A stretch of 64,000 bases of DNA from Auanema rhodensis (lineage: Eukaryota > Animalia > Nematoda): the NCBI GenBank assembly GCA_964057225.1, contig OZ059897.1, positions 11,160,001 to 11,224,000 of the forward strand. The letters run 5' to 3'. The stretch's first letter is position 1. Each line of letters starts with the position of its first letter. The translations under genes and the position numbers were made by a program. Positions 22,597 to 63,943 of this stretch are shown here, in pieces. The notes below the pieces were generated by a model, which saw only the letters and a list, made by a program, of their open reading frames with translations, was not told the DNA's origin and did not search any database.

Positions 22597-23025
22597 CAAA
22601 TTCATTTTACTTAGGCATATAAAGTGTTATGTAATCATACTAAGACAGACAGTTTTCAAGATTGCACAATCGTGGTGTTCTTTTCAAAATGTATATACAA
22701 CTCAGAAGTTTTTTGGTTAGATTAAGATACTACCTCTAATTCGGGTAATTCAACGGAATCTATTTAGGAAGGTTATGAACTGTTCTAGCCTATCGCCGTA
22801 TAAGTGATCAGTATACAAACCTATACAAAGCTATATCAGGTTAAAGTATAATACAAAAGACGCTTCATATTTATATTCAAATTCATTTTACTTAGGCATA
22901 TAAAGTGTTATGTAATCATACTAAGACAGACATTTTCCAATGTTGCACAATCGTGCTGTTCTTTTCAGAATGTATTTACAACTCAGAAGTTTTTTGGTTA
23001 GATTGAGATACTACCTCTAATTCGG
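22597..23025 (-). repeat. Inverted ~1.5 monomers of the 281-bp satellite
   Basis: CAAATTCATTTTACTTAGGCATATAAAGTG...CTACCTCTAATTCGG is the reverse complement of the satellite. The strand switches at ~22594-22597. Confidence 0.97.
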
Positions 23026-23685
23026 AAAACTAGGAACTAGAACGTAATTGAATTATATGAAACCAAAACTTTTTCGCAAGATTTACCTTCATCGGTTCCG
23101 ATGTAAAGTGCTAAACTAGAATAGTGTTTGTGTGGAATAAAATGAACCTTAGGTCCGACTCCGATTAACTCAAACAACTTATAAACAAATATTGTACGAA
23201 TATCTGCTTGTTGCCAATTTGCTAAACCTATATGTTCTTTAACGTAGTACTTTCCAATCAGAATTTCATTCCGCAATACTTGACAAATGAGCCGGCCCTA
23301 TAGACAATATTGTACAACTATATTTTATATCAAATTTTACCAAAAACTTACCAGGATTCCACCTTCCTCTGATCCATTCCTTTCACATCTGATGTCGAGG
23401 GCTGGGCATTCAGCGTTATTAGCAAAGAAGTTTGAGAAATAAAACTCTGCGGCTATTTCAATGTTTTCGAAATTTTTTTTCCGTGTAGCGCGAGAAATTT
23501 GCATTGAATTGGCAATAAATTTCATCAAATTGATGGTAGGTAACCAGGAATTTAGCTTTCATCAGTGGCATTAGGTGGTTCAAGGCTTGATCAACTGCTT
23601 GTTCAATTTGGGTCATTTGTTTCAATGCGGAAGCTTGTCAAGCCTTTTTGAACTTACTCACAAAAGCTTAACAATTCGCAGTCAT
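23025..23685 (-). pseudogene. Kinase-like copy k0, 3'-truncated at the satellite junction
   Basis: Exons 1-2 and 12 nt of exon 3 are present, then the sequence fuses to the satellite (reads VPSFPN*). There is also a +1 in the exon-1 T-run (~23473-23480). Confidence 0.8.
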
Positions 23686-24167
23686 GATGTCTCTGAAATT
23701 AATAAAATCCATTACAAATATCAAAACATAGATAAAATGAAGATTAAAAAGTATATTGAATATTTTTAAAAGATTCTCAGTGTTGGAAACGCCAGAAATC
23801 TTTTTCAATAAAAAACATAAAATCTTCCTCCACATTTCCAAAAATACATAGACATCTTTCACACGATTAAAATATCATTAAGAAAATCATTAACAATGAG
23901 ATCCCTGCATCAAAATTGCCTATTCTTAGCAATAAAGTTCATTAGCAGTGCATATACCAAGGTAATAACTGTTTATAATAATTTTCAATCTCAAAAACAT
24001 TTTAAATTCATACTCTAATATATCGGCAATATCTGGTCAAAGTATAATGTAAAAGACGCTTTATATTTATATTTAAATTCATATTACTTAGGCATCTTTA
24101 GTCTTATGTGATCATTATAACACAGATATTTTTCGTGACAAATACAGTGTAAAAAATGAAATCTGTT

Positions 24168-25289
24168 TTATTTCAAACTTTCTATCAGACTATTAAGATA
24201 GTTTTTAATTTCTACAGAATATCTCTCAAAGTTTCGACTTGGTTTACAGATGATAGAATGCTTCTTGAACAGCTCTTTTTGTTTGGAGATCGCTGCATTA
24301 GCTTCGTTGAAATTATGGGGTAGATTCCACAATTTAATGCACTTCTTTGCTACTTGAATCCGTAGCTCTTTGCTCCTCTTCCAGCTTTTGTACCCGTTCA
24401 AATATTTGTGTGCCATTTCAGGATCGACACAACTCTTTATCTAAATTACAAAGATCATAATATAAAATGCTTACAATCATACTTGAAGATGAGCAATGCT
24501 CAGTTTCTCATGACCATCAATTCCATAATTCTTCGAGTGGAGATCCTTAGGAAACAGCACTCGCCGCAGCAAGTCCCTTTGAGCGTATACTTTGCTACTC
24601 ACATGAATTCCTTCAGTTTCTGCTCGCCGAAAACTAGGAACTAGAACGTAATTGAATTATATGAAACCAAAACTTTTTCGCAAGATTTACCTTCATCGGT
24701 TTCGATGTAAAGTGCTAAACTAGAATAGTGTTTGTGTGGAATAAAATGAACCTTAGGTCCGACTCCGATTAACTCAAACAACTTATAAACAAATATTGTA
24801 CGAATATCTGCTTGTTGCCAATTTGCTAAACCTATATGTTCTTTAACGTAGTACTTTCCAATCAGAATTTCATTCCGCAATACTTGACAAATGAGCCGGC
24901 CCTATAGACAATATTGTACAACTATATTTTATATCAAATTTTACCAAAAACTTACCAGGATTCCACCTTCCTCTGATCCATTCCTTTCACATCTGATGTC
25001 GAGGGCTGGGCATTCAGCGTTATTAGCAAAGAAGTTTGAGAAATAAAACTCTGCGGCTATTTCAATGTTTTCGAAATTTTTTTTCCGTGTAGCGCGAGAA
25101 ATTTGCATTGAATTGGCAATAAATTTCATCAAATTGATGGTAGGTAACCAGGAATTTAGCTTTCATCAGTGGCATTAGGTGGTTCAAGGCTTGATCAACT
25201 GCTTGTTCAATTTGGGTCATTTGTTTCAATGCGGAAGCTTGTCAAGCCTTTTTGAACTTACTCACAAAAGCTTAACAATTCGCAGTCAT
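24168..25289 (-). pseudogene. Kinase-like copy k1 (frameshift)
   Basis: The exon-1 T-run has 8 T instead of 7 (~25077-25084), and the ORF track shows the shifted frame. Confidence 0.7.
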
Positions 25290-25771
25290 GATGTCTCTGA
25301 AATTAATAAAATCCATTACAAATATCAAAACATAGATAAAATGAAGATTAAAAAGTATATTGAATATTTTTAAAAGATTCTCAGTGTTGGAAACGCCAGA
25401 AATCTTTTTCAATAAAAAACATAAAATCTTCCTCCACATTTCCAAAAATACATAGACATCTTTCACACGATTAAAATATCATTAAGAAAATCATTAACAA
25501 TGAGATCCCTGCATCAAAATTGCCTATTCTTAGCAATAAAGTTCATTAGCAGTGCATTTACCAAGGTAATAACTGTTTATAATAATTTTCAATCTCAAAA
25601 ACATTTTAAATTCATACTCTAATATATCGGCAATATCTGGTCAAAGTATAATGTAAAAGACGCTTTATATTTATATTTAAATTCATATTACTTAGGCATC
25701 TTTAGTCTTATGTGATCATTATAACACAGATATTTTTCGTGACAAATACAGTGTAAAAAATGAAATCTGTT

Positions 25772-26891
25772 TTATTTCAAACTTTCTATCAGACTATTAA
25801 GATAGTTTTTAATTTCTACAGAATATCTCTCAAAGTTTCGACTTGGTTTACAGATAATAGAATGCTTCTTGAACAGCTCTTTTTGTTTGGAGATCGCTGC
25901 ATTAGCTTCGTTGAAATCATGGGGTAGATTCCACAATTTAATGCACTTCTTCGCTACTTGAATCCGTAGCTCTTTGCTCCTCTTCCAGCTTTTGTACCCG
26001 TTCAAATATTTCTGTGCCATTTCCGGATCGACACAACTCTTTATCTAAATTACAAAGATCATAATATAAAATGCTTACAATCATACTTGAAGATCAGCAA
26101 TGCTCAGTTTCCCATGACCATCAATTCCATAATTCTTCGAGTGAAGATCCTTAGGAAACAGCACTCGCCGCAGCAAGTCCCTTTGAGCGTATACTTTGCT
26201 ACTCACATGAATTCCTTCAGTTTCTGCTCGCCGAAAACTAGGAACTATAACGTAATTGAATTATATGAAACCAAAACTTTTTCGCAAGATTCACCTTCAT
26301 CGGTTCCGATGTAAAGTGCTAAACTAGAATAGTGTTTGTGTGGAATAAAATGAACCTTAGGTCCGACTCCGATCAACTCAAACAACTTATAAACAAATAT
26401 TTTACGAATATCTGCTTGTTCCCAATTTGCTAAACCTATATGTTCTTTAACGTAGTACTTTCCAATCAGAATTTCATTCCGCAATACTTGACAAATGAGC
26501 CCGCCCTATAGACAATATTGTACAACTATATTTTATATCAAATTTTACCAAAAACTTACCAGGATTCCACCTTCCACTGATCCATTCCTTTCACATCTGA
26601 TGTCGAGGGCTGGGCATTCAGCGTTATCAGCAAAGAAGTTTGAGAAACAAAACTCTGCGGCTATTTCAATGTATTCAAATTTTTTTCCATGTAGCGAGAG
26701 AAATTTGCATTGAATTGGCAATAAATTTCATCAAATTGATGGTAGGTGACCAGGAATTTAGCTTTCATCAGTGGCATTAGGTGGTTCAAGGCTTGATCAA
26801 CTGCTTGTTCAATTTGGGTCATTTGTTTCAATGCGGAAGCTTGTCAAGCCCTTTTGAACTTACTCACACAAGCTTAACAATTTGCAGTCAT
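25772..26891 (-). pseudogene. Kinase-like copy k2 (frameshift)
   Basis: 1-bp deletion in exon 1 (GTATTCAAAT vs GTATTCGAAAT, ~26676). Confidence 0.7.
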
Positions 26892-27373
26892 GATGTCTCT
26901 GAAAATAATAAAATCCATTACAAATATTAAAACATAGATAAAATGAAGATTAAAAAGTTTATTGAATATTTTTAAAAGATTCTCAGTGTTGGAAACGCCA
27001 GAAATCTTTTTCGATTAAAAACATAAAATCTTCCTCCACATTTCCAAAAATACATAGACATCTTTCACACGATTAAAATATCATTAAAAAAATCATTAAC
27101 AATGAGATCCCTGCATCAAAATTGCCTATTCTTAGCAATAAAGTTCATCAGCGGTGCATATACCAAGGTAATAACTGTTTATAATAATTTTCAATCTCAA
27201 AAACATTTTAAATTCATACTCTAATATATCGACAATATCAGGTCAAAGTATAATGTAAAAGACGCTTTATATTTATATTTAAATTCATATTACTTAGGCA
27301 TCTTTAGTCTTATGTGATCATTATAACACAGATATTTTTTGTGACAAATACAGTGTAAAAAATGAAACCTGTT

Positions 27374-28425
27374 TTATTTCAAACTTTCTATCAGACTATT
27401 AAGATCGTTTTTAATTTCTACAGAATATCTCTCAAAGTTTCGACTTGGTTTACAGATGATAGAATGCTTCTTGAACAGCTCTTTTTGTTTGGAGATCGCT
27501 GCATTAGCTTCGTTGAAATTATGGGGTAGATTCCACAATTTAATGCACTTCTTTGCTACTTGAATCCGTAGCTCTTTGCTCCTTTTCCAGTTTTTGTACC
27601 CGTTCAAATATTTGTGTGCCATTTCAGGATCGACACAACTCTTTATCTAAATTACAAAGATCATAATATAAAATGCTAACAATCATACTTGAAGATCAGC
27701 AATGCTCAGTTTCCCATGACCATCAATTCCATAATTCTTCGAGTGGAGATCCTTTGGAAACAGCACTCGCCGCAGCAAGTCCCTTTGAGCGTATACTTTG
27801 CTACTCACATGAATTCCTTCTGTTTCTGCTCGCCGAAAACTAGGAACTAGAACGTAATTGAATTATATGAAACCAAAACTTTTTCGCAAGATTTACCTTC
27901 ATCGGTTCCGATGTAAAGTGCTAAACTAGAATAGTGTTTGTGTGGAATAAAATGAACCTTAGGTCCGACTCCGATCAACTCAAACAACTTATAAACAAAT
28001 ATTTTACGAATATCTGCTTGTTGCCAATTTGCTAAACCTATATGTTCTTTAACGTAGTACTTTCCAATCAGAATTTCATTCCGCAATACTTGACAAATGA
28101 GCCGGCCCTATAGACAATATTGTACAACTATATTTTATATCAAATTTTACCAAAAACTTACCAGGATTCCACCTTCCTCTGATCCATTCCTTTCACATCT
28201 GATGTCGAGGGCTGGGCATTCAGCGTTATCAGCAAAGAAATTTGAGAAATAATACTCTGCGGCTATTTCAATGTATTCGAAATTTTTTTCCATGTAGCGA
28301 GAGAAATTTGCATTGAATTGGCAATGAATTTCATCAAATTGATGGTAGGTAACCAGGAATTTAGCTTTCATCAGTGGCATTAAGTGGTTCAAGGCTTGAT
28401 CAACTGCTTGTTCAATTTGGGTCAT
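27374..28425 (-). CDS. Kinase-like copy k3, open from internal Met (MTQIEQ), ~301 aa, ADL variant
   Basis: All four exons appear open and the splice sites appear intact. The upstream ATG is followed by TAA at codon 6. Confidence 0.55.
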
Positions 28426-28892
28426 TTGTTTCAAAGCGGAAGCTTGTCGAGCCCTTTTGAACTCACTCACAAAAGCTTAACAATTCGCAGTCATGATGTC
28501 TCTGAAATTTATAAAATCCATTACAAATATCAAAATATGAACAAATTGAAGATTAAAAAGTATATTGAATATTTTTAAAGGATTCTCAGTGTTGGAAACG
28601 CCAGAAATCTCTTCCGATTAAAAACATAAAATCTACCTCCACATTTCCAAAAATACATAGACATCTTTCACACGATTAAAATATCATTAAAAAAATCATT
28701 AACAATGAGATCCCTGCTACAAAATTGCCTATTCTTAGCAATAAAGTTCATCAGCAGTGCATATACCAATGTAATAACTGTTTATAATAATTTTCAATCT
28801 CAAAAACATTTTAAATTCATACTCTACTATGTTTACATTATCAGGTCAAAGTATAATGTAAAAGATGCTTTGTATTTATATTCAAATTCATA

Positions 28893-30097
28893 TTACTTAG
28901 GCATCTTTAGTGTTATGTGATCATTATAACACACATATTTTTCGTAACAAGTACAGTGTAAAAAATGAAACCTGTTATATTTCAAACTTTCTATCAGACT
29001 ATTAAAATCGTTGTTAATCTCTACGAAATATTTCACAAAGTTTCGACTTGGTTTACAGATAATAGAATGCTTCTTGAACAGCTCTTTTTGTTTGGAGATC
29101 GCTGCATTAGCTTCGTTGAAATCATGGGGTAGATTCCACAATTTAATGCACTTCTTTGCTACTTGAATCCGTAGCTCTTTGCTCGTCTTCCAGCTTCTGT
29201 ACCCGTTCAAATATTTGTGTGCCATTTCAGGATCGACACAACTCTTTATCTAAATTACAAAGATCATAATATAAAATGCTAACAATCATACTTGAAGATC
29301 AGCAATGCTCAGTTTCCCATGACCATCAATTCCATAATTCTTCGAGTGGAGATCCTTAAGAAACAGCACTCGCGGCAGCAAGTCCCTTTGAGCGTATACT
29401 TTGCTACTCACATGAATTCCTTCAGTTTCTGCTCGCCGAAAACTAGGAACTAGAACGTAATTGAATTATAAGAAACCAAAACTTTTTCGCAAGATTTACC
29501 TTCATCGGTTCAGATGTAAAGTGCTAAACTAGAATAGTGTTTGTGTGGAATAAAATGAACCTTAGGTCCGACTCCGATCAACTCAAACAACTTATAAACA
29601 AATATTTTACGAATATCTGCTTGTTGCCAATTCGCTAAACCTATATGTTCTTTAACGTAGTACTTTCCAATCAGAATTTCATTCCGCAATACTTGACAAA
29701 TGAGCCGGTTCTATAGACAATTTTGTACAATTATATTTTATATCAAATTTTACCAAAAACTCACCAGGATTCCACCTTCCTCTGATCCATTCCTTTCACA
29801 TCTGATGTCGAGGGCTGGGCATTCAGCGTTATCAGCAAAGAAATTTGAGAAATAATACTCTGCGGCTATTTCAATGTATTCGAAATTTTTTTCCATGTAG
29901 CGAGAGAAATTTGCATTGAATTGGCAATGAATTTCATCAAATTGATGGTAGGTAACCAGGAATTTAGCTTTCATCATTGGCATTAGGTGGTTCAAGGCTT
30001 GATCAACTGCTTGTTCAATTTGGGTCATTTGTTTCAAAGCGGAAGCTTGTCGAGCCCTTTTGAACTTACTCACAAAAGCTTAACAATTCGCAGTCAT
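28893..30097 (-). pseudogene. Kinase-like copy k4 (exon-2 nonsense)
   Basis: GGA>TGA near the end of exon 2 (plus strand GGTTCAGATG, ~29510). The natural stop is also changed to TAT. Confidence 0.7.
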
Positions 30098-30579
30098 GAT
30101 GTCTCTGAAATTTATAAAATCCATTACAAATATCAAAATATGAACAAATTGAAGATTAAAAAGTATATTGAATATTTTTAAAGGATTCTCAGTGTTGGAA
30201 ACGCCAGAAATCTCTTCCGATTAAAAACATAAAATCTTCCTCCACATTTCCAAAAATACATAGACCTCTTTCACACGATTAAAATATCATTTAAAAAATC
30301 ATTAACAATGAGATCCCTGCATCAAAATTGCCTATTCTTAGCAATAAAGTTTATCAGCAGTGCATATACCAATGTAATAACTGTTTATAATAATTTTCAA
30401 TCTCAAAAACATTTTAAATTCATACTCTACTATGTTTACATTATCAGGTCAAAGTATAATGTAAAAGATGCTTTATATTTATATTTAAATTCATATTACT
30501 TAGGCATCTTTAGTCTTATGTGATCATTATAACACAGATATTTTTCGTGACAAATACAGTGTAAAAAATGAAACCTGTT

Positions 30580-31701
30580 TTATTTCAAACTTTCTATCAG
30601 ACTATTAAAATCGTTGTTAATTTCTACGAAATATTTCACAAAGTTTCGACTTGGTTTACAGATAATAGAATGCTTCTTGAACAGCTCTTTTTGTTTGGAG
30701 ATCGCTGCATTAGCTTCGTTGAAATCATGGGGTAGATTCCACAATTTAATGCACTTCTTTGCTACTTGAATCCGTAGCTCTTTGCTCCTCTTCCAGCTTT
30801 TGTACCCGTTCAAATATTTCTGTGCCATTTCCGGATCGACACAACTCTTTATCTAAATTACAAAGATCATAATATAAAATGCTTACAATCATACTTGAAG
30901 ATCAGCAATGCTCAGTTTCCCATGACCATCAATTCCATAATTGTTCGAGTGGAGATCCTTAGGAAACAGCACTCGCCGCAGCAAGTCCCTTTGAGCGTAT
31001 ACTTTGCTACTCACATGAATTCCTTCAGTTTCTGCTCGCCGAAAACTAGGAACTAGAACGTAATTGAATTATATGAAACCAAAACTTTTTCGCAAGATTT
31101 ACCTTCATCGGTTCCGATGTAAAGTGCTAAACTAGAATAGTGTTTGTGTGGAATAAAATGAACCTTAGGTCCGACTCCGATCAACTCAAACAACTTATAA
31201 ACAAATATTTTACGAATATCTGCTTGTTGCCAATTTGCTAAACCTATATGTTCTTTAACGTAGTACTTTCCAATCAGAATTTCATTCCGCAATACTTGAC
31301 AAATGAGCCGGCCATATAGACAATTTTGTACAATTATATTTTATATCAAATTTTACCAAAAACATACCAGGATTCCACCTTCCTCTGATCCATTCCTTTC
31401 ACATCTGATGTCGAGGGCTGGGCATTCAGCGTTATCAGCAAAGAAATTTGAGAAATAATACTCTGCGGCTATTTCAATGTTTTCGAAATTTGTTTTCCGT
31501 GTAGCGAGAGAAATTTGCATTGAATTGGCAATAAATTTCATCAAATTGATGGTAGGTGACCAGGAATTTAGCTTTCATCAGTGGCATTAGGTGGTTCAAG
31601 GCTTGATCAACTGCTTGTTCAATTTGGGTCATTTGTTTCAGTGCGGAAGCTTGTCAAGCCCTTTTGAACTTACTCACACAAGCTTAACAATTTGCAGTCA
31701 T
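30580..31701 (-). pseudogene. Kinase-like copy k5 (frameshift, intron-1 acceptor lost)
   Basis: +1 in the exon-1 T-run (~31490), and the intron-1 acceptor AG is changed to AT at ~31314. Confidence 0.7.
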
Positions 31702-31941
31702 GATGTCTCTGAAAATAATAAAATCCATTACAAATATTAAAACATAGATAAAATGAAGATTAAAAAGTATATTGAATATTTTTAAAAGATTCTCAGTGTT
31801 GGAAACGCCAGAAATCTTTTTCGATTGAAAACATAAAATCTTCCTCCACATTTCCAAAAATACATAGACATCTTTCACACGATTAAAATATCATTAAAAA
31901 AATCATTAACAATGATTTCCCTGCTACAAAATTGCCTATTC

Positions 31942-33110
31942 TTAGCAATAAAGTTCATCAGCAGTGCATATACCAAGGTAATGACTGTTTATAATAATTT
32001 TCAATCTCAAAAACACATATTTTTCGTAACAAATACAGTGTAAAAAATGAAACCTGTTATATTTCAAACTTTCTATCAGACTATTAAAATCGTTGTTAAT
32101 TTCTACGAAATATTTCACAAAGTTTCGACTTGGTTTACAGATAATAGAATGCTTCTTGAACAGCTCTTTTTGTTTGGAGATCGCTGCATTAGCTTCGTTG
32201 AAATCATGGGGTAGATTCCACAATTTAATGCACTTCTTTGCTACTTGAATCCGTAGCTCTTTGCTCCTCTTCCAGCTTCTGTACCCGTTCAAATATTTCT
32301 GTGCCATTTCCGGATCGACACAACTTTTTATCTAAATTACAAAGATCATAATATAAAATGCTTACAATCATACTTGAAGATCAGCAATGCTCAGTTTCCC
32401 ATGACCATCAATTCCATAATTGTTCGAGTGGAGATCCTTAGGAAACAGCACTCGCCGCAGCAAGTCCCTTTGAGCGTATACTTTGCTACTCACATGAATT
32501 CCTTCAGTTTCTGCTCGCCGAAAACTAGGAACTAGAACGTAATTGAATTATATGAAACCAAAACTTTTTCGCAAGATTTACCTTCATCGGTTCCGATGTA
32601 AAGTGCTAAACTAGAATAGTGTTTGTGTGGAATAAAATGAACCTTAGGTCCGACTCCGATCAACTCAAACAACTTATAAACAAATATTTTACGAATATCT
32701 GCTTGTTGCCAATTTGCTAAACCTATATGTTCTTTAACGTAGTACTTTCCAATCAAAATTTCATTCCGCAATACTTGACAAATGAGCCGGCCCTATAGAC
32801 AATTTTGTACAATTATATTTTATATCAAATTTTACCAAAAACATACCAGGATTCCACCTTCCTCTGATCCATTCCTTTCACATCTGATGTCGAGGGCTGG
32901 GCATTCAGCGTTATCAGCAAAGAAATTTGAGAAATAATACTCTGCGGCTATTTCAATGTATTCGAAATTTTTTTCCATGTAGCGAGAGAAATTTGCATTG
33001 AATTGGCAATGAATTTCATCAAATTGATGGTAGGTAACCAGGAATTTAGCTTTCATCAGTGGCATTAGGTGGTTCAAGGCTTGATCAACTGCTTGTTCAA
33101 TTTGGGTCAT
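31942..33110 (-). CDS. Kinase-like copy k6, open from internal Met, stop lost and C-terminus extended across a 125-bp deletion
   Basis: Exons appear open (catalytic loop DLHSNN). TAA>TAT read-through continues to 31942. Confidence 0.45.
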
Positions 33111-33522
33111 TTGTTTCAATGCGGAAGCTTGTCAAGCCCTTTTGAACTTACTCACACAAGCTTAACAATTTGCAGTCATGATGTCTCTGAAAATAATAAA
33201 ATCCATTACAAATATTAAAACATAGATAAAATGAAGATTAAAAAGTATATTGAATATTTTTAAAAGATTCTCAGTGTTGGAAACGCCAGAAATCTTTTTC
33301 GATTGAAAACATAAAATCTTCCTCCACATTTCCAAAAATACATAGACATCTTTCACACGATTAAAATATCATTAAAAAAATCATTAACAATGAGATCCCT
33401 GCATCAAAATTGCCTATTCTTAGCAATAAAGTTCATCAGCAGTGCATATGCCAAGGTAATAACTGTTTATAATAATTTTCAATCTCAAAAACATTTTAAA
33501 CTCATACTCTAATATATCGACA

Positions 33523-33628
33523 ATATCAGGTCAAAGTATAATGTAAAAGACGCTTTATATTTATATTTAAATTCATATTACTTAGGCATCTTTAGTGTTA
33601 TGTGATCATAATAACACACATATTTTTC
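33523..33628 (-). other. ~106-bp satellite-homologous box in the intergenic part of the 1.6-kb unit (example; also 24029-24134 and every unit except the deleted one)
   Basis: Ungapped manual alignment to 22833-22938 gives about 91/106 identical positions. Confidence 0.92.
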
Positions 33629-33661
33629 GTAACAAATACAGTGTAAAAAATGAAACCTGTT

Positions 33662-34782
33662 ATATTTCAAACTTTCTATCAGACTATTAAAATCGTTGTT
33701 AATTTCTACGAAATATTTCACAAAGTTTCGACTTGGTTTACAGATAATAGAATGCTTCTTGAACAGCTCTTTTTGTTTGGAGATCGCTGCATTAGCTTCG
33801 TTGAAATCATGGGGTAGATTTCACAATTTAATGCACTTCTTTGCTACTTGAATCCGTAGCTCTTTGCTCGTCTTCCAGCTTCTGTACCCGTTCAAATATT
33901 TGTGTGCCATTTCAGGATCGACACAACTCTTTATCTAAATTACAAAGATCATAATATAAAATGCTAACAATCATACTTGAAGATCAGCAATGCTCAGTTT
34001 CCCATGACCATCAATTCCATAATTCTTCGAGTGGAGATCCTTAAGAAACAGCACTCGCCGCAGCAAGTCCCTTTGAGCGTATACTTTGCTACTCACATGA
34101 TATCCTTCAGTTTCTGCTCGCCGAAAACTAGGAACTAGAACGTAATTGAATTATAAGAAACCAAAACTTTTTTGCAAGATTTACCTTCATCGGTTCAGAT
34201 GTAAAGTGCTAAACTAGAATAGTGTTTGTGTGGAATAAAATAAACCTTAGGTCCGACTCCGATCAACTCAAACAACTTATAAACAAATATTTTACGAATA
34301 TCTGCTTGTTGCCAAATTGCTAAACCTATATGTTCTTTAACGTAGTACTTTCCAATCAGAATTTCATTCCGCAATACTTGACAAATGAGCCGGCCCTATA
34401 GACAATTTTGTACAATTATATTTTATATCAAATTTTACCAAAAACTTACCAGGATTCCACCTTCCTCTGATCCATTCCTTTCACATCTGATGTCGAGGGC
34501 TGGGCATTCAGCGTTATCAGCAAAGAAATTTGAGAAATAATACTCTGCGGCTATTTCAATGTATTCGAAATTTTTTTCCATGTAGCGAGAGAAATTTGCA
34601 TTGAATTGGCAATGAATTTCATCAAATGGATGGTAGGTAACCAGGAATTTAGCTTTCATCATTGGCATTAGGTGGTTCAAGGCTTGATCAACTGCTTGTT
34701 CAATTTGGGTCATTTGTTTCAAAGCGGAAGCTTGTCGAGCCCTTTTGAACTTACTCACAAAAGCTTAACAATTCGCAGTCAT
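33662..34782 (-). pseudogene. Kinase-like copy k7 (two nonsense codons)
   Basis: GGA>TGA in exon 2 (~34196) and TGG>TGA in exon 4 (~33821). Confidence 0.7.
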
Positions 34783-52877: not shown

Positions 52878-53929
52878 TTATTTCAATTTTTCTATCAGAC
52901 TATTAAAATCGTTGTTAATTTCTACGAAATATTTCACAAAGTTTCGACTTGGTTTACAGATAATAGAATGCTTCTTGAACAGCTCTTTTTGTTTGGAGAT
53001 CGCTGCATTAGCTTCGTTGAAATCATGGGGTAGACTCCACAATTTAATGCACTTCTTTGCTACTTGAATCCGTAGCTCTTTGCTCGTCTTCCAGCTTCTG
53101 TACCCGTTCAAATATTTGTGTGCCATTTCAGGATCGACACAACTCTTTATCTAAATTACAAAGATCATAATATAAAATGCTAACAATCATACTTGAAAAT
53201 CAGCAATGCTCAGTTTCCCATGACCATCAATTCCATAATTCTTCGAGTGGAGATCCTTAAGAAACAGCACTCGCCGCAGCAAGTCCCTTTGAGCGTATAC
53301 TTTGCTACTCACATGAATTCCTTCAGTTTCTGCTCGCCGAAAACTAGAAACTAGAACGTAATTGAATTATAAGAAACCAAAACTTTTTCGCAAGATTTAC
53401 CTTCATCGGTTCCGATGTAAAGTGCTAAACTAGAATAGTGTTTGTGTGGAATAAAATGAACCTTAGGTCCGACTCCGATCAACTCAAACAACTTATAAAC
53501 AAATATTTTACGAATATCTGCTTGTTGCCAATTTGCTAAACCTATATGTTCTTTAACGTAGTACTTTCCAATCAGAATTTCATTCCGCAATACTTGAAAA
53601 ATGAGCCCGCCCTATAGACAATATTGTACAATTATATTTTATATCAAATTTTACCAAAAACTTACCAGGATTCCACCTTCCTCTGATCCATTCCTTTCAC
53701 ATCTGATTTCGAGGGCTGGGCATTCAGCGTTATCAGCAAAGAAGTTTGAGAAATAAAACTCTGCGGCTATTTCAATGTATTCGAAATTTTTTTCCATGTA
53801 GCGAGAGAAATTTGCATTGAATTGGCAATAAATTTCATCAAATTGATGGTAGGTGACCAGGAATTTAGCTTTCATCAGTGGCATTAGGTGGTTCAAGGCT
53901 TGATCAACTGCTTGTTCAATTTGGGTCAT
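52878..53929 (-). CDS. Kinase-like copy k19, ~301 aa, ADF variant
   Basis: Four exons appear open from the internal Met. Confidence 0.6.
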
Positions 53930-54480
53930 TTGTTTCAATGCGGAAGCTTGTCAAGCCCTTTTGAACTTACTCACAAAAGCTTAACAATTCGCAGTCATGA
54001 TGTCTCTGAAATTTATAAAATCCATTACAAATATCAAAATATGAACAAATTGAAGATTAAAAAGTATATTGAATATTTTTAAAGGATTCTCAGTGTTGGA
54101 AACGCCAGAAATCTCTTCCGATTAAAAACATAAAATCTTCCTCCACATTTCCAAAAATACATAGACATCTTTCACACGATTAAAATATCATTAACAAAAT
54201 CATTAACAATGAGATCCCTGCATCAAAATTGCCTATTCTTAGCAATAAAGTTCATCAGCAGTGCATATACCAAGGTAATAACTGGTTATAATAATTTTCA
54301 ATCTCAAAAACATTTTAAATTCATACTCTAATATATCGGCAATATCTGGTCAAAGTATAATGTAAAAGACGCTTTATATTTATAATTAAATTCATATTAC
54401 TTAGGCATCTTTAGTGTTATGTGATCATTATAACACAGATATTTTTCGTGACAAATACAGTGTAAAAAATGAAACCTGTT

Positions 54481-55532
54481 TTATTTCAAACTTTCTATCA
54501 GACTATTAAAATCGTTGTTAATTTCTACGAAATATTTCACAAAGTTTCGACTTGGTTTACAGATAATAGAATGCTTCTTGAACAGCTTTTTTTGTTTGGA
54601 GATCGCTGCATTAGCTTCGTTGAAATCGTGGGGTAGACTCCACAATTTAATGCACTTCTTTGCTACTTGAATCCGTAGCTCTTTGCTCGTCTTCCAGCTT
54701 CTGTACCCGTTCAAATATTTGTGTGCCATTTCAGGATCGACACAACTCTTTATCTAAATTACAAAGATCATAATATAAAATGCTAACAATCATACTTGAA
54801 AATCAGCAATGCTCAGTTTCCCATGACCATCAATTCCATAATTCTTAGAGTGGAGATCTTTAAGAAACAGCACTCGCCGCAGCAAGTCCCTTTGAGCGTA
54901 TACTTTGCTACTCACATGATATCCTTCAGTTTTTGCTCGCCGAAAACTAGGAACTAGAACGTAATTGAATTATAAGAAACCAAAACTTTTTTGCAAGATT
55001 TACCTTCATCGCTTCCGATGTAAAGTGCTAAACTAGAATAGTGTTTGTGTGGAATAAAATGAACTTTAGGTCCGACTCCGATCAACTCAAACAACTTATA
55101 AACAAATATTTTACGAATATCTGCTTGTTGCCAATTTGCTAAACCTATATGTTCTTTAACGTAGTACTTTCCAATCAGAATTTCATTCCGCAATACTTGA
55201 CAAATGAGCCCGCACTAAAAACAATATTGTACAAATATATTTTATATCAAATTTTATCGAAAACTTACCAGGATTCCACCTTCCTCTGATCCATTCCTTT
55301 CACATCTGATTTCGAGGGCTGGGCATTCAGCGTTATCAGCAAAGAAGTTTGAGAAATAAAACTCTGCGGCTATTTCAATGTATTCGAAATTTTTTTCCAT
55401 GTAGCGAGAGAAATTTGCATTGAATTGGCAATAAATTTCATCAAATTGATGGTAGGTGACCAGGAATTTAGCTTTCATCAGTGGCATTAGGTGGTTCAAG
55501 GCTTGATCAACTGCTTGTTCAATTTGGGTCAT
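54481..55532 (-). CDS. Kinase-like copy k20, ~301 aa, ADF variant
   Basis: Four exons appear open. Synonymous changes occur in and next to the catalytic loop (AAG>AAA, TCG>TCT). Confidence 0.6.
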
Positions 55533-56013
55533 TTGTTTCAATGCGGAAGCTTGTCAAGCCCTTTTGAACTTACTCACAAAAGCTTAACAATTCGCAGTCA
55601 TGATGTCTCTGAAATTTATAAAATCCATTACAAATATCAAAATATGAACAAATTGAAGATTAAAAAGTATATTGAATATTTTTAAAGGATTCTCAGTGTT
55701 GGAAACGCCAGAAATCTCTTCCGATTAAAAACATAAAATCTTCCTCCACATTTCCAAAAATACATAGACATCTTTCACACGATTAAAATATCATTAACAA
55801 AATCATTAACAATGAGATCCCTGCATCAAAATTGCCTATTCTTAGCAATAAAGTTCATCAGCAGTGCATATACCAAGGTAATAACTGGTTATAATAATTT
55901 TCAATCTCAAAAACATTTTAATTTCATACTCTACTATGTTTACATTATCAGGTCAAAGTGTAATGTAAAAGACGCTTTGTATTTATATTCAAATTCATAT
56001 TACTTAGACATCT

Positions 56014-57134
56014 TTAGTGTTTGTAATCATTATAACACACATATTTTTCGTAACAAATACAGTGTAAAAAATGAAACCTGTTATATTTCAATTTTTCTAT
56101 CAGACTATTAAAATCGTTGTTAATTTCTACGAAATATTTCACAAAGTTTCGACTTGGTTTACAGATAATAGAATGCTTCTTGAACAGCTCTTTTTGTTTG
56201 GAGATCGCTGCATTAGCTTCGTTGAAATCATGGGGTAGACTCCACAATTTAATGCACTTCTTTGCTACTTGAATCCGTAGCTCTTTGCTCGTCTTCCAGC
56301 TTCTGTACCCGTTCAAATATTTGTGTGCCATTTCAGGATCGACACAACTCTTTATCTAAATTACAAAGATCATAATATAAAATGCTAACAATCATACTTG
56401 AAAATCAGCAATGCTCAGTTTCCCATGACCATCAATTCCATAATTCTTCGAGTGGAGATCCTTAAGAAACAGCACTCGCCGCAGCAAGTCCCTTTGAGCG
56501 TATACTTTGCTAATCACATGAATTCCTTCAGTTTCTGCTCGCCGAAAACTAGGAACTAGAACGTAATTGAATTATAAGAAACCAAAACTTTTTCGCAAGA
56601 TTTACCTTCATCGGTTCCGATGTAAAGTGCTAAACTAGAATAGTGTTTGTGTGGAATAAAATGAACCTTAGGTCCGACTCCGATCAACTCAAACAACTTA
56701 TAAACAAATATTTTACGAATATCTGCTTGTTGCCAATTTGCTAAACCTATATGTTCTTTAACGTAGTACTTTCCAATCAGAATTTCATTCCGCAATACTT
56801 GACAAATGAGCCCGCACTAAAAACAATATTGTACAATTATATTTTATATCAAATTTTATCGAAAACTTACCAGGATTCCACCTTCCTCTGATCCATTCCT
56901 TTCACATCTGTTGTCGAGGGCTGGGCATTCAGCGTTATCAGCAAAGAAATTTGAGAAATAATACTCTGCGGCTATTTCAATGTATTCGAAATTTTTTTCC
57001 ATGTAGCGAGAGAAATTTGCATTGAACTGGCAATAAATTTCATCAAATTGATGATAGGTGACCAGGAATTTAGCTTTGATCAGTGGCATTAGGTGGTTCA
57101 AGGCTTGATCAACTGCTTGTTCAATTTGGGTCAT
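56014..57134 (-). CDS. Kinase-like copy k21, ADF variant, read-through tail
   Basis: Exons appear open. The stop is TAA>TAT. Confidence 0.5.
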
Positions 57135-57684
57135 TTGTTTCAATGCGGAAGCTTGTCGAGCCCTTTTGAACTTACTCACAAAAGCTTAACAATTCGCAGT
57201 CATGATGTCTCTGAAATTTATAAAATCCTTTACAAATATCAAAATATGAACAAATTGAAGATTAAAAAGTATATTGAATATTTTTAAAGGATTCTCAGTG
57301 TTGGAAACGCCAGAAATCTCTTCCGATTAAAAACATAAAATCTTCCTCCACATTTCCAAAAATACATAGACATCTTTCACACGATTAAAATATCATTAAA
57401 AAAATCATTAACAATGAGATCCCTGCATCAAAATTGCCTATTCTTAGCAATAAAGTTCATCAGCAGTGCATATACCAATGTAATAACTATTTATAATAAT
57501 TTTCAATCTCAAAAACATTTTAAATTCATACTCTTATATATCGGCAATATCTGGTCAAAGTATAATGTAAAAGACGCTTTATATTTATAATTAAATTCAT
57601 ATTACTTAGGCATCTTTAGTGTTATGTGATCATTATAACACAGATATTTTTCGTGACAAATACAGTGTAAAAAATGAACCTGTT

Positions 57685-58736
57685 TTATTTCAAACTTTCT
57701 ATCAGACTATTAAAATCGTTGTTAATTTCTACGAAATATTTCACAAAGTTTCGACTTGGTTTACAGATAATAGAATGCTTCTTGAACAGCTCTTTTTGTT
57801 TGGAGATCGCTGCATTAGCTTCGTTGAAATCATGGGGTAGACTCCACAATTTAATGCACTTCTTTGCTACTTGAATCCGTAGCTCTTTGCTCGTCTTCCA
57901 GCTTCTGTACCCGTTCAAATATTTGTGTGCCATTTCAGGATCGACACAACTCTTTATCTAAATTACAAAGATCATAATATAAAATGCTAACAATCATACT
58001 TGAAAATCAGCAATGCTCAGTTTCCCATGACCATCAATTCCATAATTCTTCGAGTGGAGATCCTTAAGAAACAGCACTCGCCGCAGCAAGTCCCTTTGAG
58101 CGTATACTTTGCTACTCACATGAATTCCTTCAGTTTCTGCTCGCCGAAAACTAGAAACTAGAACGTAATTGAATTATAAGAAACCAAAACTTTTTCGCAA
58201 GATTTACCTTCATCGGTTCCGATGTAAAGTGCTAAACTAGAATAGTGTTTGTGTGGAATAAAATGAACCTTAGGTCCGACTCCGATCAACTCAAACAACT
58301 TATAAACAAATATTTTACGAATATCTGCTTGTTGCCAATTTGCTAAACCTATATGTTCTTTAACGTAGTACTTTCCAATCAGAATTTCATTCCGCAATAC
58401 TTGAAAAATGAGCCCGCCCTATAGACAATATTGTACAATTATATTTTATATCAAATTTTACCAAAAACTTACCAGGATTCCACCTTCCTCTGATCCATTC
58501 CTTTCACATCTGATTTCGAGGGCTGGGCATTCAGCGTTATCAGCAAAGAAGTTTGAGAAATAAAACTCTGCGGCTATTTCAATGTATTCGAAATTTTTTT
58601 CCATGTAGCGAGAGAAATTTGCATTGAATTGGCAATAAATTTCATCAAATTGATGGTAGGTGACCAGGAATTTAGCTTTCATCAGTGGCATTAGGTGGTT
58701 CAAGGCTTGATCAACTGCTTGTTCAATTTGGGTCAT
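57685..58736 (-). CDS. Kinase-like copy k22, ~301 aa, ADF variant
   Basis: Four exons appear open from the internal Met. Confidence 0.6.
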
Positions 58737-59287
58737 TTGTTTCAATGCGGAAGCTTGTCAAGCCCTTTTGAACTTACTCACAAAAGCTTAACAATTCGCA
58801 GTCATGATGTCTCTGAAATTTATAAAATCCATTACAAATATCAAAATATGAACAAATTGAAGATTAAAAAGTATATTGAATATTTTTAAAGGATTCTCAG
58901 TGTTGGAAACGCCAGAAATCTCTTCCGATTAAAAACATAAAATCTTCCTCCACATTTCCAAAAATACATAGACATCTTTCACACGATTAAAATATCATTA
59001 ACAAAATCATTAACAATGAGATCCCTGCATCAAAATTGCCTATTCTTAGCAATAAAGTTCATCAGCAGTGCATATACCAAGGTAATAACTGGTTATAATA
59101 ATTTTCAATCTCAAAAACATTTTAAATTCATACTCTAATATATCGGCAATATCTGGTCAAAGTATAATGTAAAAGACGCTTTATATTTATAATTAAATTC
59201 ATATTACTTAGGCATCTTTAGTGTTATGTGATCATTATAACACAGATATTTTTCGTGACAAATACAGTGTAAAAAATGAAACCTGTT

Positions 59288-60339
59288 TTATTTCAAACTT
59301 TCTATCAGACTATTAAAATCGTTGTTAATTTCTACGAAATATTTCACAAAGTTTCGACTTGGTTTACAGATAATAGAATGCTTCTTGAACAGCTCTTTTT
59401 GTTTGGAGATCGCTGCATTAGCTTCGTTGAAATCGTGGGGTAGACTCCACAATTTAATGCACTTCTTTGCTACTTGAATCCGTAGCTCTTTGCTCGTCTT
59501 CCAGCTTCTGTACCCGTTCAAATATTTGTGTGCCATTTCAGGATCGACACAACTCTTTATCTAAATTACAAAGATCATAATATAAAATGCTAACAATCAT
59601 ACTTGAAAATCAGCAATGCTCAGTTTCCCATGACCATCAATTCCATAATTCTTAGAGTGGAGATCTTTAAGAAACAGCACTCGCCGCAGCAAGTCCCTTT
59701 GAGCGTATACTTTGCTACTCACATGATATCCTTCAGTTTTTGCTCGCCGAAAACTAGGAACTAGAACGTAATTGAATTATAAGAAACCAAAACTTTTTTG
59801 CAAGATTTACCTTCATCGCTTCCGATGTAAAGTGCTAAACTAGAATAGTGTTTGTGTGGAATAAAATGAACTTTAGGTCCGACTCCGATCAACTCAAACA
59901 ACTTATAAACAAATATTTTACGAATATCTGCTTGTTGCCAATTTGCTAAACCTATATGTTCTTTAACGTAGTACTTTCCAATCAGAATTTCATTCCGCAA
60001 TACTTGACAAATGAGCCCGCACTAAAAACAATATTGTACAAATATATTTTATATCAAATTTTATCGAAAACTTACCAGGATTCCACCTTCCTCTGATCCA
60101 TTCCTTTCACATCTGATTTCGAGGGCTGGGCATTCAGCGTTATCAGCAAAGAAGTTTGAGAAATAAAACTCTGCGGCTATTTCAATGTATTCGAAATTTT
60201 TTTCCATGTAGCGAGAGAAATTTGCATTGAATTGGCAATAAATTTCATCAAATTGATGGTAGGTGACCAGGAATTTAGCTTTCATCAGTGGCATTAGGTG
60301 GTTCAAGGCTTGATCAACTGCTTGTTCAATTTGGGTCAT
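59288..60339 (-). CDS. Kinase-like copy k23, ~301 aa, ADF variant
   Basis: Four exons appear open. Near-duplicate of k20. Confidence 0.6.
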
Positions 60340-61558
60340 TTGTTTCAATGCGGAAGCTTGTCAAGCCCTTTTGAACTTACTCACAAAAGCTTAACAATTC
60401 GCAGTCATGATGTCTCTGAAATTTATAAAATCCATTACAAATATCAAAATATGAACAAATTGAAGATTAAAAAGTATATTGAATATTTTTAAAGGATTCT
60501 CAGTGTTGGAAACGCCAGAAATCTCTTCCGATTAAAAACATAAAATCTTCCTCCACATTTCCAAAAATACATAGACATCTTTCACACGATTAAAATATCA
60601 TTAACAAAATCATTAACAATGAGATCCCTGCATCAAAATTGCCTATTCTTAGCAATAAAGTTCATCAGCAGTGCATATACCAAGGTAATAACTGGTTATA
60701 ATAATTTTCAATCTCAAAAACATTTTAATTTCATACTCTACTATGTTTACATTATCAGGTCAAAGTGTAATGTAAAAGACGCTTTGTATTTATATTCAAA
60801 TTCATATTACTTAGACATCTTTAGTGTTTGTAATCATTATAACACACATATTTTTCGTAACAAATACAGTGTAAAAAATGAAACCTGTTATATTTCAAAC
60901 TTTCTATCAGACTATTAAGATCGTTTTTAATTTCTACAGAATATCTCTCAAAGTTTCGACTTGGTTTACAGATGATAGAATGCTTCTTGAACAGCTCTTT
61001 TTGTTTGGAGATCGCTGCATTAGCTTCGTTGAAATCATGGGGTAGATTCCACAATTTAATGCACTTCTTTGCTACTTGAATCCGTAGCTCTTTGCTCCTC
61101 TTCCAGCTTTTGTACCTGTTCAAATATTTGTGTGCCATTTCAGGATCGACACAACTCTTTATCTAAATTACAAAGATCATAATATAAAATGCTTACAATC
61201 ATACTTGAAGATCAGCAATGCTCAGTTTCCCATGACCATCAATTCCATAATTCTTCGAGTGGAGATCCTTAGGAAACAGCACTCGCCGCAGCAAGTCCCT
61301 TTGAGCGTATACTTTGCTACTCACATGAATTCCTTCAGTTTCTGCTCGCCGAAAACTAGGAACTAGAACGTAAATGAATTATATGAAACCAAAACTTTTT
61401 CGCAAGATTTACCTTCATCGGTTCCGATGTAAAGTGCTAAACTAGAATAGTGTTTGTGTGGAATAAAATGAACCTTAGGTCCGACTCCGATCAACTCAAA
61501 CAACTTATAAACAAATATTTTACGAATATCTGCTTGTTGTCAATTTGCTAAACCTATA

Positions 61559-61587
61559 CAGTCCTGTGCGATGAAGGTTGCACACCC
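61559..61587 (+). repeat. Left TIR of Tc1 (29 bp)
   Basis: Exact reverse complement of 62941-62969. Confidence 0.97.
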
Positions 61588-61800
61588 CGATGTTAGAGGC
61601 CCCAGAAAACCACCTCAAACTACAAAAAAAAATTCGAAAAAATTAATTTGGGTTTCAGGCTGAAGTATCAACATATCGATTAAAATTGAAGTTAAAATGA
61701 TGTAAACTGAATTTTTTAAAAATAATTTAAGTTTAATATTTAAAATATTCATATTTTTGCTTGTTTTGCATAATAAAAAACTAAAATTTATAAATTTAAG

Positions 61801-62820
61801 ATGGCTAGAGGCAAGAAAACTTCTCCTGAAGTAAGATCCATCATAATCAATATGAAGGAGAAGGGCTCAAGCGTTCGGAAAATAGGCGAAATGCTGTCGA
61901 TGCCTCCCAGTACCATTCAAAGAGTATGGAAAGATGCCCAGAAACCATACAAAGTGGATATGAGAGGACGAGAAAGAAAAACCACGACCAATCCAGACAA
62001 TCTGTTGGTTAGGCTGGTCCAGAAGCATCCAGACATCACATCCATGCAGTTGAGCCAACATCTTCAACGTATGTTTAACATTATGCTTCATCCCTCCAAC
62101 GTAAGAAGAAGGCTGTTAGCCAGAAACTTACGGGCCCGTGTTCCTGTGCGAAAGCCGTTGATTTCGGTCAACAACAGGCTCAAGCGTGTTCAGTTTGCAC
62201 AAGAGCATCTGAACTGGACCACTGAAGATTGGTCTTCCGTCATTTTCACTGATGGAAGCAAATTTTGCTTATTTGGAAATGACGGACCTGGATTCGTCAG
62301 AAGGCCACCCAATCAGCGGTACAACCCCAAATACATGCGACCTACGGTCAAGCATGGTGGCGGAAACGTCATGGTTTGGGGTTGTTTCTGTTACTCCGAA
62401 ATTGGGCCACTATTCCGCGTAGAAGGCAGAATGTGTGCAGAAGACTACCAGCACATTCTTCAAGAAGCCTTCATGCCTTTCGCCATCAACAAGTTCGGAA
62501 CGAGGAATCGATTTATCCTGCAGCAAGATAACGATCCCAAGCACACGGCTCGATCGACAACGAAGTTCATGGAAGAGAACCGGCTGAACGTTCTAAATTG
62601 GCCCAGCCAGTCTCCGGATCTCAACCCCATCGAGCATCTTTGGAGAGAATTTGGACGAAGATCTTCAAAATACCCATGTTCTGATAAGTATGAGAAGTTC
62701 AGAGTCCTCCGTACACTCTGGAGGGAGATATCACCGGATCTGCTGAAGAAACTCGTGGAATCGATGCCCAGAAGACTTCAAGCAGTGATTGATAATTTTG
62801 GATATCCAACTAAATATTAA
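61801..62820 (+). CDS. Tc1-like transposase, 339 aa
   Basis: N-terminal HTH region with RGR, then VIFTD, KHGGGNVMVWGCF, QQDNDPKH and WPSQSPDLNPIEHLW (34 residues between D and E), ending in GYPTKY. Intronless open frame. Confidence 0.97.
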   Translation: MARGKKTSPEVRSIIINMKEKGSSVRKIGEMLSMPPSTIQRVWKDAQKPYKVDMRGRERKTTTNPDNLLVRLVQKHPDITSMQLSQHLQRMFNIMLHPSNVRRRLLARNLRARVPVRKPLISVNNRLKRVQFAQEHLNWTTEDWSSVIFTDGSKFCLFGNDGPGFVRRPPNQRYNPKYMRPTVKHGGGNVMVWGCFCYSEIGPLFRVEGRMCAEDYQHILQEAFMPFAINKFGTRNRFILQQDNDPKHTARSTTKFMEENRLNVLNWPSQSPDLNPIEHLWREFGRRSSKYPCSDKYEKFRVLRTLWREISPDLLKKLVESMPRRLQAVIDNFGYPTKY

Positions 62821-62940
62821 TAAACTTGTTTAATTAATTTTTAAAATTTTTTTATTGATTTTGTAGTGGTTTTTAACACCCAAAATATTTTTTTTCGAAT
62901 TTTCTGAAGTTTGATTCAAAAGATACGGGGGGATTCTAGT

Positions 62941-62969
62941 GGGTGTGCAACCTTCATCGCACAGGACTG
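62941..62969 (-). repeat. Right TIR of Tc1 (29 bp)
   Basis: Exact reverse complement of 61559-61587. Confidence 0.97.
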
Positions 62970-63361
62970 TATGTTCTTCAACGTAGTACTTTCCAATCAG
63001 AATTTCATTCCGCAATACTTGACAAATGAGCCCGCACTAAAAACAATATTGTACAATTATATTTTATATCAAATTTTATCGAAAACTTACCAGGATTCCA
63101 CCTTCCTCTGATCCATTCCTTTCACATCTGATGTCGAGGGCTGGGCATTCAGCGTTATCAGCAAAGAAATTTGAGAAATAATACTCTGCGGCTATTTCAA
63201 TGTATTCGAAATTTTTTTCCATGTAGCGAGAGAAATTTGCATTGAATTGGCAATAAATTTCATCAAATTGATGATAGGTGACCAGGAATTTAGCTTTTAT
63301 CAGTGGCATTAGGTGGTTCAAGGCTTGATCAACTGCTTGTTCAATTTGGGTCATTTGTTTC

Positions 63362-63943
63362 AATGCGGAAGCTTGTCAAGCCCTTTTGAACTTACTCACA
63401 AAAGCTTAACAATTCGCAGTCATGATGTCTCTGAAATTTATAAAATCCATTACAAATATCAAAACATGAACAAATTGAAGATTAAAAAGTATATTGAATA
63501 TTTTCAAAGGATTCTCAGTGTTGGAAACGCCAGAAATCTCTTCCGATTAAAAACATAAAATCTTCCTCCACATTACCAAAAATACATAGACATCTTTCAC
63601 ACGATTAAAATATCATTAAAAAAATCATTAACAATGAGATCCCTGCATCAAAAATGCGGAAGCTTGTCAAGCCCTTTTGAACTTACTCACAAAAGCTTAA
63701 CAATTCGCAGTCATGATGTCTCTGAAATTTATAAAATCCATTACAAATATCAAAATATGAACAAATTGAAGATTAAAAAGTATATTGAATATTTTTAAAG
63801 GATTCTTAGTGTTGGAAACGCCAGAAATCTCTTCCGATTAAGAACATAAAATCTACCTCCACATTTCCAAAAATACATAGACATCTTTCACACGATTAAA
63901 ATATCATTAAAACAATCATTAACAATGAGATCCCTGCATCAAA
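63362..63943. repeat. 291-bp tandem duplication of the 5' end/upstream region of the unit
   Basis: AATGCGGAAGCTTGTC occurs at 63362 and again at 63653, directly after CCCTGCATCAAA. Confidence 0.92.

Follow-up and report, generated by a model that had tools for sequence, protein, structure and literature searches.

A 64,000-nucleotide stretch of Auanema rhodense DNA (hereafter the window), which lies at 11.16-11.22 Mb of the 23.1-Mb contig C5, carries a 1.6-kb macrosatellite from position 23025 onwards, and raises the question whether such a repeat is a family of working genes. A preliminary description, made from the letters of the window alone, had read it as a tandem array of about 25 copies of a hidden four-exon gene for a small atypical kinase. 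Our analysis indicates that the macrosatellite is probably an amplified, 5′-truncated pseudogene fragment joined to a piece of satellite, and not a working gene family.

The tandem organisation is as it had been described. The spacing of 20-mers over positions 23025-64000 of the window peaked at 1603 bp, and an anchor placed at the stop-codon end of the gene recurred 24 times, first at 24168 and last at 60890. This region contains 24 near-full units together with broken edge units. The units measure 1601 to 1604 bp with the exception of two deletion-bearing ones (1479 and 1587 bp). Over the array, the GC content is 32-34% and the GC skew is constantly negative. The 1603-bp repeat was invisible to Tandem Repeats Finder (TRF), which was run with a period limit of 500.

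Joining the four minus-strand segments of one unit, u16 (Table 1), resulted in 975 nt, which translate into 324 codons and a stop. The hidden exon encodes the motif DLHSKNYGIDGHGKLSIAD(F/L), in which the Asn stands at D+5 and the second Asp at N+13, giving the D-x4-N-x12-D spacing already recognized. The spliced product of 324 residues aligned to residues 76-399 of its closest relative, P0005 (UniRef A0A1I7UBK2, 399 residues, “ubiquitin-like domain-containing protein”, labelled Caenorhabditis tropicalis), with 61% identity, an E value of 3e-152 and no gap across any of the three junctions. The three intron positions are also kept in paralogues elsewhere in the same genome. Furthermore, three RNA-like runs of the same species each produced one contig of about 1.2 kb that skips exactly the three introns, whereas a DNA run shows no such skipping. 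The gapless alignment, the intron positions of the paralogues and the RNA-like contigs together show that the four-exon model, with its three GT-AG introns joined in frame, is correct. The splice dinucleotides had also been thought to be mostly kept across the copies. Three acceptors are lost, those of intron 1 in u05 and u08 and of intron 2 in u14, and about four losses are expected by chance at the divergence of the array according to our own rough estimate; the conservation is thus no better than chance.

These four exons are the last four of a gene that has six. No match was found in the array unit to residues 1-75 of P0005, which form a ubiquitin-like domain (Z 12 to ubiquitin). A sister copy located on contig C8 (L011, at C8:13586891, around 13.59 Mb of this 26.9-Mb contig; locus C8:13583000-13592000) is a full-length six-exon gene, encoded on the + strand at L011:3355-5012. 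Its two ubiquitin-like exons (3355-3429 and 3475-3629) are followed by an intron of about 250 nt that ends in TTTCAG, and then by the four exons. The DNA identity between the array unit and L011 is about 90% and uniform over exons, introns and flanks. The homology does not, however, reach back to the start of the intron after the ubiquitin-like exons; it sets in about 24 nt inside this intron, and a satellite box lies upstream of this point in the array unit. The unit therefore consists of an intron remnant, four exons, the 3′ flank and a piece of satellite, repeated head to tail. The TTTCAG acceptor persists in the array as an orphan, with a 2-nt deletion relative to L011. We had considered whether the C8 copy is an ordinary parent gene located in unique DNA; the idea was dropped, as L011 itself lies within a related 291-bp satellite, of which ten monomers precede the gene and two follow it, and this explains the origin of the box. 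A + strand open reading frame (ORF) of the spacer, starting with MRSLHQN, was considered as an inverted remnant of a ubiquitin-like exon and was likewise dropped, the tblastn matches being weak (E 0.03-0.09).

None of the units holds a complete ORF together with a start and an upstream region of its own, as each begins inside an intron of the parent gene. Both the family and L011 have an N-terminal ubiquitin-like domain fused to the kinase domain, and every array unit is devoid of it; the small stand-alone kinase of the preliminary description is thus a gene without its 5′ part.

The copies carry lesions in addition to the truncation. Only u16 is open over all 324 codons; codon 6 is TAA in all 19 other in-frame units and in the consensus of the 20. 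The same stop was found in an outlying copy (L014, C5:11236706). Its presence in both the array consensus and L014 shows that the codon-6 stop is older than the amplification, and the TTA at this codon of u16 is a secondary change. Hence, the four-exon ORF could be recognized only where the ancestral stop had mutated away. Codon 16 is also a stop in five units and codon 178 in six; stops at codons 132, 234 and 272 are each confined to a single unit. Frameshifts affect u01, u02, u05 and the truncated unit at the left edge, u00. Beyond the codon-6 stop, 11 of the 24 units are broken downstream. At the protein level, Lys131, Asp214, Asn219 and Asp232 are kept in 19-20 of 20 array copies. The Glu of helix C is replaced by Lys in all 20 in-frame copies, and L011 and L014 retain Glu. 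The set of Lys, Glu, Asp-x4-Asn and Asp is thus present in the family and incomplete in the array; in L011, the family-invariant Asn is changed to Ser.

The variation among the copies is of the neutral type. The diversity was 0.022, 0.023 and 0.0245 at codon positions 1, 2 and 3, respectively. The 100 segregating coding variants comprise 71 missense, 24 silent and 5 nonsense changes, and random mutation of the consensus predicts 20% silent and 4.9% nonsense. The ratio of nonsynonymous to synonymous substitution rates (dN/dS) between the array consensus and L011 was 0.83 (about 0.8 when taken from the side of L011), and ranged from 0.75 to 0.83 in the test for purifying selection. Polarisation of the missense changes with P0005 as outgroup assigned 25 to the array lineage and 20 to the L011 lineage, with one invariant residue hit on each. 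No sign of purifying selection on the copies is seen in the even diversity across codon positions, in the frequency of nonsense changes, which is that of random mutation, or in these dN/dS values. A dN/dS near 1 combined with a lack of spliced reads had been named beforehand as the mark of an amplified pseudogene, and the neutral variation within the array, the value obtained against L011 and the lack of an array-type transcript in the RNA-like assemblies correspond to this outcome.

The expression of the repeat was analyzed in sequencing runs of the species. The unit was not found in any run recorded as RNA. Seven RNA-like runs of one study contained 0.02-0.04 of its 31-mers; by our arithmetic, a transcript diverged by 10% would leave a share of 0.9^31 = 0.04. 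When three RNA-like runs were compared with the unit, each gave a single contig, spliced at the three introns and around 9% different from the window. This contig agrees with L011 at all 40 listed differences, including T>C at 48700, and its 5′ overhang of 255 nt starts with the sequence at L011:3903. These data indicate that the transcribed and spliced gene is the full-length C8 copy and not the array. The C8 transcript is correctly spliced, including a GC-AG first intron, and its contig was assembled at a depth of 15-18. The spliced junctions expected by the preliminary description do exist, all three of them, in the RNA-like contigs; these belong to the C8 paralogue, and no array-type transcript was found in the assembled contigs of this one study.

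We then considered the protein that the intact gene would encode. The family-core profile retrieved 290 relatives among 1.84 billion proteins. The named members come from Caenorhabditis (including CBG05181 of C. briggsae), Mesorhabditis, Auanema (including sp. JU1783), Panagrolaimus and Aphelenchoides, and outside the nematodes from two sciaroid flies and one holozoan protist; all are annotated as uncharacterised. The ubiquitin family PF00240 was matched in two of them (P0007 and P0022). Among 66 family members, conservation is 90% or more at each of Lys206, Glu221, Asp289, Asn294 and Asp307 (numbered as in P0005).

P0005 served as a proxy for the array product in structure modelling, given its 61% identity, while the sequence searches were performed with exon pieces and the family profile. 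The AlphaFold2 model of P0005 reached a predicted local distance difference test score (pLDDT) of 92 and a predicted template modelling score (pTM) of 0.82 for the full length and 0.88 for residues 76-399, a domain whose numbering is that of the array protein. The domain is predicted to begin with a bundle of three helices and to continue with the canonical topology of a kinase, in which Lys131 is the last residue of strand beta3, Glu146 is part of helix C, Asp214 and Asn219 come after helix E, and Asp232 comes after the beta7-beta8 pair. When residues 76-399 were searched exhaustively by structure against 48,161 chains, the ten best chains were all atypical kinases, with Z scores between 9.9 and 11.4: CtkA and actin-fragmin kinase (both 11.4), CotH (11.1), HipA (11.0), PI4KIIalpha (10.8 over 214 residues), HipT (10.0) and MavQ (9.9). 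The top seven matches aligned 188-228 residues over model residues 78-324. Foldseek returned kinases almost exclusively, among them VPS34, APH(2''), the kinase domains of lanthipeptide synthetases and eukaryotic protein kinases (E ~1e-4). The matches of the full-length model were dominated by ubiquitin, and the domain alone gave the kinases. Language-model features pointed in the same direction: the named neighbours were plant and algal proteins combining ubiquitin with PI3_PI4_kinase, followed by HipA-like kinases, and the nearest named Atlas clusters were also ubiquitin plus PI3_PI4_kinase proteins (0.90 and 0.89).

At the level of sequence profiles, no match to a curated kinase family was obtained. 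Pfam and NCBIfam searches with the four separate exons gave sub-threshold matches only (AceK_kinase, E 0.095); those to Rgg_C, RPN7 and adm_rel were regarded as noise. Pfam searches of ten full-length relatives detected no kinase family, DUF4135 (E 0.008) being below its cut-off. The family profile matched only ubiquitin among the PDB sequences. PF00454 (PI3_PI4_kinase) had no match in the ten relatives, and the resemblance to this family is one of fold (Z 10.8) and language-model features. The bilobal kinase fold of the modelled domain supports the assignment of the family to protein-kinase-like (PKL) folds of the atypical kind, as represented by type II PI4K, HipA/CtkA and actin-fragmin kinase, and the model suggests that its members may work like an atypical kinase with a ubiquitin-like handle. 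Both Foldseek and the structural search thus found the PKL fold that the preliminary description had anticipated. Its kinase-like assignment is supported for the family, through the P0005 model; the array copies are without the invariant Glu.

In several respects the evidence tells against the array being a dead fragment. In thirteen of the 24 units, the frame is open all the way from Met24 to the stop. The diversity of the exons is also somewhat lower than that of the intergenic part (0.023 versus 0.041), and weak constraint or gene conversion could thus be masking selection. Contigs drop rare or repeated variants, and the RNA evidence consists of contigs of a single study; low or stage-specific transcription of the array, or small RNAs, would have been missed. 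The orphan TTTCAG lies 7 nt ahead of the ATG and might, in principle, serve as the acceptor for a trans-spliced leader. The array is probably located in a germline-restricted central block of an autosome. A multicopy family of small, active kinases devoid of the ubiquitin-like domain, translated from Met1 in u16 or from Met24 in the other units and perhaps trans-spliced at TTTCAG in the germline only, would fit the open frames and the acceptor, as well as the kinase-like fold of the family and the retention of four of the five catalytic-type residues in nearly every copy. We nevertheless consider it decidedly improbable. The invariant Glu is replaced throughout, the variant spectrum is neutral with nonsense changes at the random rate, the promoter and the ubiquitin-like exons are missing, and the RNA-like assemblies yielded a single-copy paralogue at good depth and no transcript of the array. 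Together with the codon-6 stop, these results do not support the active amplified family, comparable to DUX4 or Stellate, that had been proposed.

The array might also act as a source of small interfering RNAs or PIWI-interacting RNAs that silence the expressed full-length paralogue, by analogy with Su(Ste), which silences Stellate in Drosophila. A homologous array on the + strand about 135 kb away (C5:11357704-11369493), the flip in the orientation of the satellite box at the left edge (~22600-22830), the transcription of the putative target, and a DNA identity to L011 that permits targeting by some small RNAs would all be compatible with this role. It is, however, unlikely, as the contigs contain no transcription of the array from either strand, and satellite arrays of pseudogene fragments need no function to exist. 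A wider scheme, in which the truncated copies and the opposite array would feed a germline small-RNA restraint of the paralogue, as a Stellate/Su(Ste)-like conflict module placed entirely in DNA discarded from the soma, or would encode germline-only Met24 kinase-like proteins devoid of the ubiquitin-like domain, is a long shot. That the repeat is an artefact, resulting from collapse or expansion during assembly or from a chance ORF in AT-rich satellite, is hardly credible: repeats are difficult to assemble, and nothing of weight can be added on this side, while the units differ by 2-4%, carry their own stops and indels and in one case a transposon, and about half of the words of the unit recur in independent DNA runs from three studies. 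A chance ORF is excluded by the homology to an annotated protein, which extends over the full length without a gap.

If the macrosatellite is an amplified pseudogene fragment, its history may be reconstructed as follows. The source gene, a member of the mainly nematode family, has six exons and codes, after its ubiquitin-like domain, for a short bundle of helices and an atypical kinase-like domain. The stretch between the end of the ubiquitin-like exons and a point ~107 bp into the downstream satellite would have been duplicated head to tail, and would then have expanded to at least 24 units beside the 281-bp satellite in the middle of contig C5, presumably by unequal exchange. The founder was already without the promoter and the ubiquitin-like exons, and carried the stop at codon 6 and the Lys in place of the helix-C Glu; the copies have drifted neutrally since the amplification. 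A later event is the insertion of a 1.4-kb Tc1/mariner element, which contains an intact + strand ORF for a transposase of 339 residues (61801-62820; HTH_Tnp_Tc3_2, 9e-17; DDE_3, 2e-13). Since it has inserted in the last array unit, it is younger than the amplification.

The comparison with known systems sets the repeat apart in several ways. The array product aligns to A0A1I7UBK2 76-399 and groups with this protein in the tree of the nematode ubiquitin-like-domain family, a family whose C-terminal domain has no Pfam model and no described function. Unlike these proteins, the array unit has neither the ubiquitin-like domain nor the invariant Glu, and has a stop at codon 6. Type II PI4K-gamma proteins of plants (UbDK) combine a ubiquitin-like domain with a PI3_PI4_kinase domain and act as protein kinases (PMC4986951). 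The nematode family is similar in that an N-terminal ubiquitin-like domain precedes an atypical kinase-like domain; however, its structural scores to PI4K are tied with those to HipA/CtkA, CotH and actin-fragmin kinase, and the likeness is one of fold and not of demonstrated shared descent. Actin-fragmin kinase, HipA/CtkA and CotH, the best fold matches (Z 11.0-11.4), share only 7-13% sequence identity with the family and have other N-terminal modules. Like D4Z4/DUX4 and Stellate/Su(Ste), the repeat is a unit of kilobase scale derived from a protein-coding gene and embedded in satellite. D4Z4 and Stellate contain a complete, expressed ORF per unit, whereas the A. rhodense unit is 5′-truncated, lesioned and neutral, with no transcript in the contigs; its likeness to Su(Ste) holds only if small RNAs exist.

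These observations call for caution in annotation, as a repeat unit may show flawless-looking exons along with a catalytic motif and still be a dead fragment. They also provide an example of the birth of a macrosatellite, in which a gene fragment and about 107 bp of neighbouring satellite yield a new 1.6-kb unit. Finally, a mainly nematode family that was uncharacterised can now be described as a ubiquitin-like domain followed by a helical bundle and an atypical kinase-like domain, an architecture that parallels the plant UbDK/PI4K-gamma proteins.

The germline assembly of A. rhodense strain APS4 comprises 180.9 Mb; each autosome has a central, chromosome-specific block of tandem repeats that is eliminated from the soma, and the eliminated DNA contains only 360 protein-coding genes, few of them expressed, with no mention of ubiquitin or kinase genes in the preprint (bioRxiv 10.64898/2026.08.27.747507). 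Germline-restricted DNA of this species would be expected to lie between internal telomere-addition sites and to have an approximately 8-fold lower coverage in whole-animal DNA. The genome analyzed here (180,911,798 bp) has a repeat layout like that of the germline assembly with its central satellite blocks. The window occupies the part of its contig in which the preprint puts the central eliminated block of an autosome. Both the window and L011 are located in satellite, and both are therefore probably germline-restricted. L011 is thus a candidate for an expressed gene in probably germline-restricted DNA, and adds to the short list of expressed eliminated genes of A. rhodense. Other loci of the family include divergent single copies on C3, C5, C6 and C7.

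Two further arrays related to the family were observed. The one at C5:11357704-11369493 (L013, C5:11355000-11364999) lies on the opposite (+) strand and consists of rearranged 2814-bp repeats of the gene fragment found in the window, with a scrambled exon order: pieces of exons 4 and 2, and then exon 1. The other is a tandem array at 6.39 Mb of C8 whose period is about 3186 bp (L012, C8:6386000-6395999, continuing to ~6402025). It is built from a paralogue of 32-36% identity in which the ubiquitin-like exons are still present, and a stop was found just before the catalytic Asp (F*DLHSAN) in the 3 copies examined.

The distribution of the family is patchy. Its members in the flies are P0023 and P0025, from Sitodiplosis mosellana and Bradysia odoriphaga, and the protist member is from Syssomonas. 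The lineages of both flies have germline-restricted chromosomes. P0005 itself, labelled as a Caenorhabditis protein, groups with the Auanema copies (61% identity) and not with the other Caenorhabditis members (37-41% identity), which may result from patchy retention of a fast-evolving subfamily, from contamination or from gene transfer.

Table 1. Positions of the macrosatellite, its reference unit and the flanking repeats in the window
Feature	Position	Strand	Evidence or remark
281-bp satellite array with periodic 228-bp variant monomers	1..22594	.	TRF; left flank of the macrosatellite
Leftmost unit (u00), cut off within exon 3	23025..24167	-	blastn of the reference unit: 48530-49671 vs 23025-24167, 95.9%
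u01-u23 and first 668 bp of u24, each with the four 3′ exons of the gene	24168..61558	-	Anchors, unit lengths (1603 bp; range 1479-1604), per-unit exon projection
Reference unit u16, sole unit with unbroken 324-codon frame	48069..49671	-	Exon projection
Exon 1 of the four-exon model (exon 3 of the full gene)	48857..49189	-	ATG is internal Met76 of P0005; codon 6 (49174-49172) is TTA here
Intron, 54 nt, GT..AG	48803..48856	-	Skipped in transcript contigs of the paralogue
Exon 2: strand beta3 with Lys131 (YYVK), helix C	48592..48802	-	Codon 146 (48700-48698) is AAA (Lys); Glu in family and L011
Intron, 50 nt, GT..AG	48542..48591	-	RNA contigs show the exact joint 48541/48592
Exon 3: catalytic-loop and DFG-like motif, Asp214 to Asp232 (48446-48390)	48384..48541	-	Alignment; weak AceK_kinase match, E 0.095
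Intron, 42 nt, GT..AG	48342..48383	-	Skipped in RNA contigs
Exon 4: C-terminal helices and stop codon	48069..48341	-	Splice join, P0005 alignment
TTTCAG acceptor, 7 nt upstream of the ATG	49190..49202	-	Sequence reading; L011 equivalent is the 3′ splice site after the ubiquitin-like exons
Satellite-derived 106-107-bp box within the unit	49530..49636	-	Abuts the homologue of the L011 intron after the ubiquitin-like exons; founding junction
Tc1/mariner insertion splitting the last unit (u24)	61559..62966	+	blastn; Pfam
Rest of the interrupted unit (62967-63657), then partial duplicate running past the window end	62967..64000	-	blastn; TRF 291-bp two-copy repeat, 63362-63948

The 106-107-bp box is common to the 281-bp satellite and to every 1.6-kb unit, where it occurs in inverted orientation. 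Within positions 22232-22936 of the window, the orientation of the box flips between ~22593 and ~22830, and the satellite and the 1.6-kb repeat therefore face each other head to head across an inversion junction. In the 281-bp satellite (1-22594), the short 228-bp monomer recurs irregularly, every ~1.3-4.2 kb, and recurring stretches are offset by 5455 bp (for instance 12696 and 18151, or 14048 and 19503). This spacing and offset suggest a higher-order structure or an internal segmental duplication of the satellite.

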